A DNA stretch of 63,568 nucleotides, filler included, from Olpidium bornovanus S191 (GCA_017911155.1; 31 parts of 31 records of this genome joined end to end with filler, not necessarily neighbours in it); one strand, 5' to 3'; counted from the first letter of the whole stretch, positions 336 to 2,185 are shown. Notes: generated by a model not told the origin, from the letters alone. Numbers and translations: made by a program.

Positions 336-2185
336 ATGTCGGACCCGGACGCGGTCGTGAGCGCGCTGCGCCGCTGCGACTTCTTCAAGGACTTCGACGA
401 CCAGGTCCTCGATGCCATCATCAGCATCGGCGCGCCGTCCCACTTCAAAAACGGTCAGGTCGTCCTGAGGGAAGGCGAGCTCGACAAGAACTGCTGTATC
501 GTGGTCAAGGGCGAGGTGCAGGTCTCGAAAAGGGGTCACGACGGCGCGGACGTCCCGCTCGTCCGGCTGCGTCAGGGCGACTTCGTCGGGCTGGGCGCGC
601 TGGTAAGGGAGAGGGGGGCCGGGGCGCGCGCGCGCGGGAAGCAGGGGGGGAGGAGGGGGGGGGGCAAGAAGGAGCGAGGAGGATTGAGAACGGGCGTGCT
701 CACCCCATCAGGGCAAAAAATCATGCCCCATCACATCTCGCGCCTTCCGCGTTTTTTCTTTCTTCGCTTTTGTTCCGCGTCGCGCTAACGCTCCCGACAC
801 CCCGCCCGCTGGCCTTACCGGTTGTCTTTCGCAAACACTTCCCCGCTCTCCCTCTCCCCCACATTACCGAAATCAACTCCCCCCTTTAGCTCTCGGACAA
901 ACCCCACAACGCCACTGTCTCGGCCGCAGGGGACGACACGGTCCTCTTGCAGCTTTCCTCCGACGGCCTGCTTGAGTTCGTCAGCCAAAATCCCCTCGTC
1001 GCCAAGGCCCTCCTCCGATATTTCGCCGAGGAGCTGCGCCTGTTTCGGTCCAAACTTGTCGATGTCGTGGGCAATGTGCCCGACGAAGAGGAAAACACGA
1101 TCGTGTTCTTCGACGCCAAGCAGTACGAAAAGGACGTGTTCGACCGTCACCTTCAAGATGCAAAGGAGGCGCTAGTTCATTTTAAGTACGTAGACGCGAA
1201 GCTCAACAAAAATTCGGTTGCGCTGGCGGCCGGTGCGAAGGTAAGGCTGATCCGCGGGCGTGGTTTCCTCTTCGTAGTTGTGTTCCTCGCACGTCTCGTT
1301 AGAAACGGAGCAGATGTTTACGACGTCATGTCGCTGCAGGCCGTTTGTATTTTTGTCAACGACGTGTGCGATGCGGACGTCCTCGTCGAGCTTAGCGGGC
1401 TCGGGGTGGAAATGGTGCTGCTCCGCTGTGCCGGGTGAGACAGGAATTGCGATGTCGAACAGCTGCCGCTTCCTCTTTCGCCTTCGCCGGCAGAGAGCTT
1501 ACAATTTTCCGTTTGTTGCCAATGACGCGCGTGCAGGTTCAACAACGTCGACCTGAGCGCGGCCGGCGCCCTCGGTATCACGGTCGCCACGGTGCCACGG
1601 TACAGCCCGTACGCTGTTGCGGAGCACGCGGTCGCGCTCTTGTTGTCGGTGCGTCTGCGTTTCAAAACTCCCCGCGGGCGAACGAAGAGCTCTTGCAATT
1701 TCGGTTCGAACGTCTCTCACGATTCGCACGCCCTCTATTCTTTTTCCAGATGAACCGCCGGATACCGCGGGCATGCAACCGCGTGATGACGGGAAATTTT
1801 ACTCTCGACGGGCTTGTCGGCTTTGACCTCCATGGGAAAACCGTCGGCGTCATCGGCACCGGTAAGGTATGTGCTCTAATTAGCTTTAGGATTCCCTCTG
1901 GCGCCCTGCCTGTCAGTAATGGGCCAGTCTTGTCCGCAAATATCTTCTTTCCATTCCAGATCGGCCAGTGCTTCATCAATATTGTGGTCGGCTTTGGCTG
2001 CAAGGTGCTGTGCCACGATCCGTACCCCGTCAAGGATCTGGAGAAGCTTCCCGGTGTGAAATACGCAGATCTCGACACGGTGCTTCGCAGCTGCGACGTG
2101 TTTTCACTGCACGCGCCACTAACCCCGGAGACGAAGCACATAATAAACAATGAAACGATTGCGAAGATGCCCAAGGGCGCCATGA
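336..2185 (+). CDS. Fusion protein: N-terminal cyclic-nucleotide-binding (CRP-like) domain + LdhA-type D-lactate/2-hydroxyacid dehydrogenase; 3' end truncated
   Basis: Exons 336-602, 890-1240, 1340-1434, 1537-1648, 1750-1866, 1960->2185, all GT..AG and phase-compatible. CNB part: FFKDFDD..FKNGQVVLREGE..CIVVKGEVQV..GDFVGLGAL|LSDKPHNATV. LdhA part: AKQYEK, AVCIFVND, LRCAGFNNVDL, AVAEHAV, GKTVGVIGTGKIG, SLHAPLTPET. Confidence 0.92.

Follow-up and report, generated by a model that had tools for sequence, protein, structure and literature searches.

A cyclic-nucleotide-binding domain fused to a D-lactate dehydrogenase in Olpidium bornovanus: an expressed gene with a candidate allosteric sensor

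LdhA-type D-lactate dehydrogenases (D-LDHs) are usually regarded as stand-alone fermentation enzymes. The locus described here raises the question whether such an enzyme can be joined to a sensor of its own, that is, whether a cyclic-nucleotide-binding (CNB) domain and a D-LDH are really encoded by one gene and, if so, what kind of ligand the sensor might read. If real, a built-in sensor would let some microbes adjust the final step of glycolysis directly by a small ligand and not by transcription or substrate levels. The window, i.e., the whole stretch of DNA that was analyzed, comprises 63,568 nucleotides from Olpidium bornovanus S191 (GCA_017911155.1). Its positions 1–2185 are the whole of the 2185-nt contig JAEFCI010006595.1, which carries the gene.

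Gene structure and transcription

Six exons with GT..AG at all borders are read in frame into a 389-aa partial fusion protein, the 3′ part of which is cut by the contig end at 2185. The ATG at 336 is the earliest start codon downstream of an in-frame stop. The first-pass annotation had described six phase-compatible exons as encoding the CNB fold; the exons are indeed compatible in phase, but the CNB domain is encoded by exons 1 and 2 alone, and the six exons together code for the CNB domain and about two thirds of the dehydrogenase. The Pfam scan was run exon by exon, and exon 2 by itself stays below the threshold because it contains no complete domain, only the end of the CNB domain and the beginning of the dehydrogenase. 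The features, all on the plus strand, are as follows.

1–121, +: exon fragment of a beta-CASP (CPSF73-like) ribonuclease, outside the fusion gene (NCBIfam aCPSF1, 7.5e-7)
150–335, +: 5′ leader of the fusion transcript, start approximate (X1 record 2 begins at 150; X9 record 21 covers 118–487)
336–602, +: exon 1, N-terminal helix and beta-barrel strands of the CNB domain and first half of the cassette, GDFVGLGAL (Pfam cNMP_binding, 2.2e-11; PKG and CRP matches in the PDB; CRP alignment)
591–593, +: Leu codon at the position of the cassette Glu (alignment with CRP)
603–889, +: intron 1, 287 nt, GT..AG (spliced out in RNA contigs of X1, X4, X9, and X10)
890–1240, +: exon 2, the junction exon with CNB tail and D-LDH head (one unbroken RNA contig piece, 889–1238; alignments)
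905–907, +: His codon in the second half of the cassette, KPHNATV, which is followed by the last strands (exon 2; CRP alignment)
about 992–1072, +: B and C helices (exon 2)
1070–1096, +: acidic linker GNVPDEEEN (exon 2)
from 1097, +: first strand and helix of the D-LDH (exon 2; E. coli LdhA alignment)
1241–1339, +: intron 2, 99 nt, in frame and stop-free (spliced out in X1 and X9)
1340–1434, +: exon 3, substrate-binding domain of the D-LDH, AVCIFVND with the Phe51 equivalent (58% identity to E. coli LdhA)
1435–1536, +: intron 3, 102 nt (spliced out in RNA contigs)
1537–1648, +: exon 4, FNNVDL...VPRYSPYAVAEHA, with the Tyr100 equivalent (Pfam 2-Hacid_dh, 5.9e-9; E. coli LdhA alignment)
1649–1749, +: intron 4, 101 nt (spliced out in RNA contigs)
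1750–1866, +: exon 5, beginning of the NAD-binding domain with G-T-G-K of GxGxxG at 1855–1866 (Pfam 2-Hacid_dh_C, 1.4e-4; LdhA alignment)
1867–1959, +: intron 5, 93 nt, interrupting the motif GTGK|IG (spliced out in RNA contigs)
1960–2185, +: exon 6, truncated at the contig end, Rossmann fold including the NAD-type Asp at 2017–2019 (Pfam 2-Hacid_dh_C, 4.6e-20; PDB 5z20, 4.2e-16; LdhA alignment)

All five introns are confirmed by RNA contigs of four studies (runs X1, X4, X9, and X10), in which precisely the stretches 603–889, 1241–1339, 1435–1536, 1649–1749, and 1867–1959 are missing. One of these contigs, X1 record 2 with a length of 906 nt, is composed of 150–601, 889–1238, and 1338–1436; CNB domain, junction and beginning of the dehydrogenase thus stand together in a single RNA contig, so that one transcript runs across 1000–1200 as the proposed fusion demands. 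Another RNA contig covers 1414–2185 and continues for 487 nt beyond the contig end; altogether the RNA contigs reach 439–487 nt beyond 2185. There is no Met codon in the junction exon 890–1240, and the dehydrogenase can therefore not be translated separately from a start inside this exon. Two raw runs of 2026 carrying the same species label (X21 and X15) yield almost no reads on the gene, too few to bear on its expression.

DNA contigs from soil and root metagenomes (X25, X26) stem from a relative with about 95% identity and span 1057–2185, introns included. Within the gene this relative shows seven indels, each of them inside a predicted intron; an eighth one, a deletion of 3 nt at 148, is located in the A-rich tract where the 5′ leader begins. 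Its intron 2 carries insertions of 9 and 1 nt and is thus 10 nt longer, from which it follows that this intron is non-coding. Among the listed substitutions 16 are found in 391 nt of exon and 24 in 274 nt of intron, the exon rate being about half. The presence of such closely similar DNA in these metagenomes means that a close relative of the source organism lives in soil.

That adjoining genes or an assembly chimera were misread as one protein is extremely improbable: it could be suspected because the contig measures only 2185 nt, the deposited gene model is poorly spliced and the contig shows an odd break near its 5′ end, at position 121, but the junction lies within one exon under continuous RNA contigs in four runs, the soil DNA contig of the 95% relative spans 1057–2185 and the identical junction is present in more than 100 homologues. 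The earlier judgment that a junction inside exon 890–1240 speaks against a chimera was thus correct, and the gene is a real, spliced and transcribed single-gene fusion of a CNB domain and a D-LDH.

The deposited gene model (P0001, 501 aa, positions 336–2184) is erroneous, and the present data allow its correction. In this model intron 1 is spliced correctly, introns 2 and 5 are read through, and a wrong splice after 1434 puts the model out of frame between exons 3 and 5, up to about 1750. Retention of intron 2 would add 33 residues.

Over positions 1–121, at the start of the contig, RNA contigs of four runs agree exactly with the sequence and then go on with CTGCTCGAGGCCTACTGG..., thereby leaving the window. 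Positions 122–123 are AC and not a GT donor, and an RNA contig (X9 record 21) runs unbroken through 118–487. The break at 121 could be a mis-join of the contig, a partial duplicate of the beta-CASP exon or an unusual splice. Low-complexity tracts, long and rich in A, C or G, occupy 128–200, 270–285, and 640–665 within the 5′ leader and intron 1. The one rich in A draws many unrelated contigs, at very high depth in X9.

The two halves of the protein

The first-pass annotation had proposed a CNB fold including the C-helix, and this is borne out. Such a fold consists of an eight-stranded beta-barrel, the helices flanking it and a C-helix. Exon 1 matches Pfam PF00027 (2.2e-11) and the first half of exon 2 can be aligned with the C-helix region of GlxR and other members of the CRP family. 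Both structure models used here are those of the homologue P0002, which is the nearest full-length homologue (51% identical), and not of the Olpidium protein itself. The CNB part of this model (pLDDT 93.5) superposes best on GlxR, M. tuberculosis CRP and T. thermophilus CAP with TMq values of 0.74–0.79 (0.79 for GlxR and Mtb CRP) at about 2 Å and with the long C-helix included; the CNB-B domains of PKG follow closely behind. A protein atlas search with the junction exon yielded weak leads only (0.78), namely small bacterial CNB fragments, and a word-based homologue search limited to the CNB part of P0002 returned nothing useful. A possible correspondence between T127/S128 of the CRP C-helix, the motif E-T-S conserved in the bacterial members and F-R-S of the Olpidium protein was dropped, as the register is off by one and uncertain.

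Between the two domains lies the short acidic linker that had been noticed before, GNVPDEEEN. The C-helix Arg and the FFD strand are 24–25 residues apart in 87 of 112 sequences and 25 residues apart in the Olpidium protein. Judged from the alignment, this near-fixed spacing between C-helix and dehydrogenase argues for a defined mechanical connection and not for a loose tether.

For the second half we aligned the protein directly with E. coli LdhA. The segment TIVFFDAKQYEK, encoded by the second half of exon 2, aligns with residues 2–13 of LdhA, and exons 3–6 are 45–62% identical to it, in agreement with the earlier assignment as an LdhA-type D-LDH from its first strand on. The Rossmann motif GVIGTGKIG is identical to that of E. 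coli LdhA and the NAD-type Asp is kept (CHDPYP vs. AFDPYP in E. coli), as had also been predicted from the GTGKIG and HDPY motifs. In the 2-hydroxyacid dehydrogenases this conserved Asp marks a preference for NADH, and in the E. coli enzyme Phe51 and the Tyr of the beta5–alphaA loop limit the substrate to acids of the size of pyruvate (PMC6303947). The equivalents of Phe51 (in AVCIFVND) and Tyr100 (in VPRYSPY) are both kept. The best PDB matches are D-LDHs, and both Pfam domains, 2-Hacid_dh and 2-Hacid_dh_C, are present (exons 4, 5, and 6). The protein stops at ...MPKGAM, about 5 residues short of the motif NTSRG with the catalytic Arg; as the contig ends there, none of the three catalytic residues (Arg, Glu, and His) is visible. 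In 93 aligned homologues these three residues are invariant and the NAD-type Asp is nearly so. The dehydrogenase part of P0002 matches the characterized D-LDHs 5z20 (P. aeruginosa) and 5z21 (F. nucleatum) at about 1e-104, and its model superposes on both with TM values of 0.91–0.93 by target. By these alignments, the dehydrogenase half is an LdhA-type, NAD-type D-LDH (2HADH, LDHD subfamily). Within L007:264-5158, on a Logan contig, P0002 is encoded by an uninterrupted ORF that adjoins a gene for a poly(A)-binding protein; P0002 therefore comes from an intron-poor eukaryote or from cDNA.

Each half thus has well-known counterparts. The D-LDHs E. coli LdhA, 5z20, and 5z21 share fold and motifs with the fusion from the first strand on, but the characterized enzymes of this type have about 330 aa and no extra domain, whereas the Olpidium protein has about 158 additional N-terminal residues which make up the CNB domain. 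With CRP and GlxR the fusion shares the beta-barrel and the long C-helix (superposing at about 2 Å in the P0002 model), the C-helix sequence resembling that of GlxR; their output is a helix–turn–helix, while that of the fusion is an enzyme.

A widespread family

A profile search found more than 100 protein clusters which combine PF00027, PF00389 and PF02826. The eukaryotic members come from many chytrids, including Batrachochytrium and Rhizoclosmatium, from holozoan protists, from Corallochytrium, Abeoforma and Nk52, from Balamuthia and from a diatom-like entry; the many bacterial members are of the Planctomycetota/Verrucomicrobiota type and are labelled Planctomycetota, Opitutaceae, Omnitrophota, Kiritimatiellaeota and Aureabacteria. 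In the databases they bear the names "Cyclic nucleotide-binding domain-containing protein" or "D-lactate dehydrogenase family protein". The full-database search with the junction exon returned the gene's own model P0001 and full-length fusions of 495–513 aa, and the AlphaFold DB cluster representative A0A1Z5K380 aligns over the full length. Structural matches in Swiss-Prot cover the dehydrogenase part only (residues 163–499 of the model).

A FastTree phylogeny places the Olpidium protein in a clade with chytrid proteins and Nk52 (97% local support), apart from a mostly bacterial clade. This placement fits a zoosporic fungus outside the core chytrids. To judge from the sequence comparisons, the combination of CNB domain and D-LDH is old and widespread and the Olpidium gene is an ordinary member of the family. 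The architecture had been put forward as uncharacterized. This stands in so far as literature searches aimed at the fusion or its domain pairing gave no description of it and we found no reviewed or published characterization of the architecture, and a 2007 census of CNB families lists no dehydrogenase family. The architecture is not new, however; it is common and already annotated in the databases. Its value lies rather in offering a testable case of sensor-controlled fermentation with natural variants of the pocket, and the family provides the comparison set: canonical bacterial members, fungal and protist members with a His, and members with neither of the two cassette residues.

Two long relatives, P0011 and P0012 (811–818 aa), have the dehydrogenase domains, show no PF00027 match and form a separate long branch.

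The ligand pocket and the possible sensor function

In the phosphate-binding cassette of CNB domains the Glu contacts the 2′-OH of the ribose and the Arg contacts the phosphate. In the Olpidium protein the residues equivalent to E72, R82, and S83 of E. coli CRP are Leu, His, and Asn; in place of the canonical cassette G-E-x-A-L...R-[ST]-A it has G-L-G-A-L...H-N-A, and the part of the cassette that makes backbone contacts (x-A-T-V) is kept. Among 111 homologues, 37 have both Glu and Arg and 77 have kept the Arg, and these are mostly bacterial or metagenomic sequences. The Olpidium protein and 13–14 of the 111 homologues form a His class with the pattern G-[LMIAF]-G-x...H-S-A-[ST]-V, the position of the Glu being taken by Leu, Met, Ile, Ala or Phe. 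The core chytrids have kept the Glu and have replaced the Arg by Leu, Ile or Met, and the Balamuthia group has neither Glu nor Arg. The Gly of the beta2–beta3 loop (Gly169 of PKA) is missing in the Olpidium protein (EGELD) and in the other His-class sequences, while most of the canonical members among those listed have it within the motif EGExGD.

The first-pass annotation had proposed that a second messenger, cAMP or cGMP, binds to the CNB domain and gates the enzyme directly, e.g., in zoospores or under hypoxia. We regard this as unlikely. The fold is that of the cAMP and cGMP receptors, many bacterial members carry the full canonical cassette (P0043 matches CRP at 1.2e-15) and the backbone-contact part of the cassette is retained. 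However, because the cassette Glu and Arg are missing, classical binding of cAMP or cGMP is unlikely in this protein; in addition the Ser is changed to Asn and the beta2–beta3 Gly, which is reported to co-vary with the cassette Arg (PMC2246266), is absent as well. In PKA the exchange of Arg for Lys alone lowers the affinity for cAMP about ten-fold; in PDZ-GEF, His or Met takes the place of the Arg, and its crystal structure contains no ligand (PMC2246266). The pocket residues thus make direct gating of the Olpidium protein by cAMP or cGMP doubtful, although a cyclic phosphate could still be bound by the His that takes the place of the Arg. As far as their sequences indicate, those bacterial members in which the cassette is canonical are likely to be true cAMP-responsive versions.

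Quite improbable, in our view, is that the CNB domain is a ligand-free remnant which serves solely as dimerization or scaffolding module via its C-helix. Within the eukaryotic classes the identity of the CNB domain is low, in the His class on average 28% compared with 56% for the dehydrogenase, which could mean a relaxed constraint, and across the eukaryotes the position of the Arg is variously occupied by His, Leu, Ile, Met or Ala. Moreover, four chytrid proteins of 334–342 aa (P0027, P0084, P0117, and P0124) are plain D-LDHs without CNB domain nested in the fusion clade and could point to a secondary loss of the sensor domain; their gene models may, on the other hand, simply be truncated. 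Against a remnant speaks that the domain is retained across fungi and holozoans and that the best-conserved columns of the CNB domain in the His class are those of the cassette: G81, G85, G87, H95 (12 of 12), A97, V99, and A101. Going by this conservation pattern, the His class is not simply decaying.

We therefore favor, as rather probable, the reading that the gene encodes an expressed NAD-dependent LdhA-type D-LDH with a CRP-like allosteric sensor, the ligand or binding mode of which is most likely not classical. We read the domain as a working sensor because the pocket is the best-conserved part of the CNB domain and because its C-helix stands at a fixed distance from the dehydrogenase. 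In such an enzyme a small ligand would bind to the beta-barrel pocket of the N-terminal domain, and binding would be passed on by the long C-helix and the connector of fixed length to strand 1 of the substrate-binding domain, where an altered domain closure or oligomer state would change the rate of pyruvate reduction. In the subclass of the Olpidium protein Leu and the invariant His stand where ribose and phosphate are held, and ligand or binding mode would then probably be non-classical. Appended regulatory domains act in this manner in SerA, and CNB domains do so in Pat or PKG.

More tentatively, we suggest that the invariant His marks a change of ligand in the opisthokont subclass of the family, away from cAMP and cGMP and either to a gas or redox signal sensed by bound heme or to a non-cyclic purine nucleotide or nucleoside, e.g., GTP. 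In that case lactate fermentation would be directly responsive to oxygen or energy status, and the members of the family would show how nature has exchanged the ligand repeatedly on a single enzyme scaffold. Older work on nucleotide allostery of such enzymes, mentioned in the first-pass annotation, does exist, to judge from the title of a 1971 JBC paper on GTP inhibition of fungal D(-)-LDHs; GTP is said to inhibit these fungal enzymes according to that 1971 report, and the CNB domain may be the structural basis of this old nucleotide inhibition. With regard to heme, a His at the analogous position ligates heme in CooA (PMC2246266), and with this precedent a change of ligand is a concrete possibility.

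Among known systems the mycobacterial acetyltransferase Pat (PDB 4ava) comes close to the proposed sensor enzyme, as its CNB domain is likewise fused directly to a metabolic enzyme, though the catalytic domain is a different one. Pat is activated by cAMP through a canonical cassette. It matches the family members P0043 (4.8e-14) and P0002 (3.2e-5), and 4ava is among the PDB matches of exon 1. D-3-phosphoglycerate dehydrogenase (SerA), found among the sequence matches as PGDH, belongs to the same 2-hydroxyacid dehydrogenase superfamily and also has an appended ligand-binding regulatory domain, which is, however, C-terminal, of the ACT type and serine-binding, whereas that of the fusion is an N-terminal CNB domain. 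In CooA, CprK and PDZ-GEF the residue at the position of Arg209 of PKA is replaced within a CNB fold, as in the Olpidium protein (PMC2246266). These are transcription or exchange factors, unlike the fusion enzyme, for which heme or another ligand is at most suggested by analogy. Finally, the kinetoplastid PGK-like proteins combine the fold of a glycolytic enzyme with a CNB domain in a protist (PMC7729029). They differ in domain order and in that the catalytic residues of the PGK domain are gone, while those of the CNB–D-LDH family are invariant.

Around the genes of two bacterial members we saw neither a conserved partner nor a cyclase. In an Opitutaceae genome (L003:5576-7476) a stand-alone cNMP_binding gene of 142 aa lies directly upstream of the CNB–D-LDH gene and overlaps its start by 4 nt, and this pair of genes recurs in a second contig (L004).
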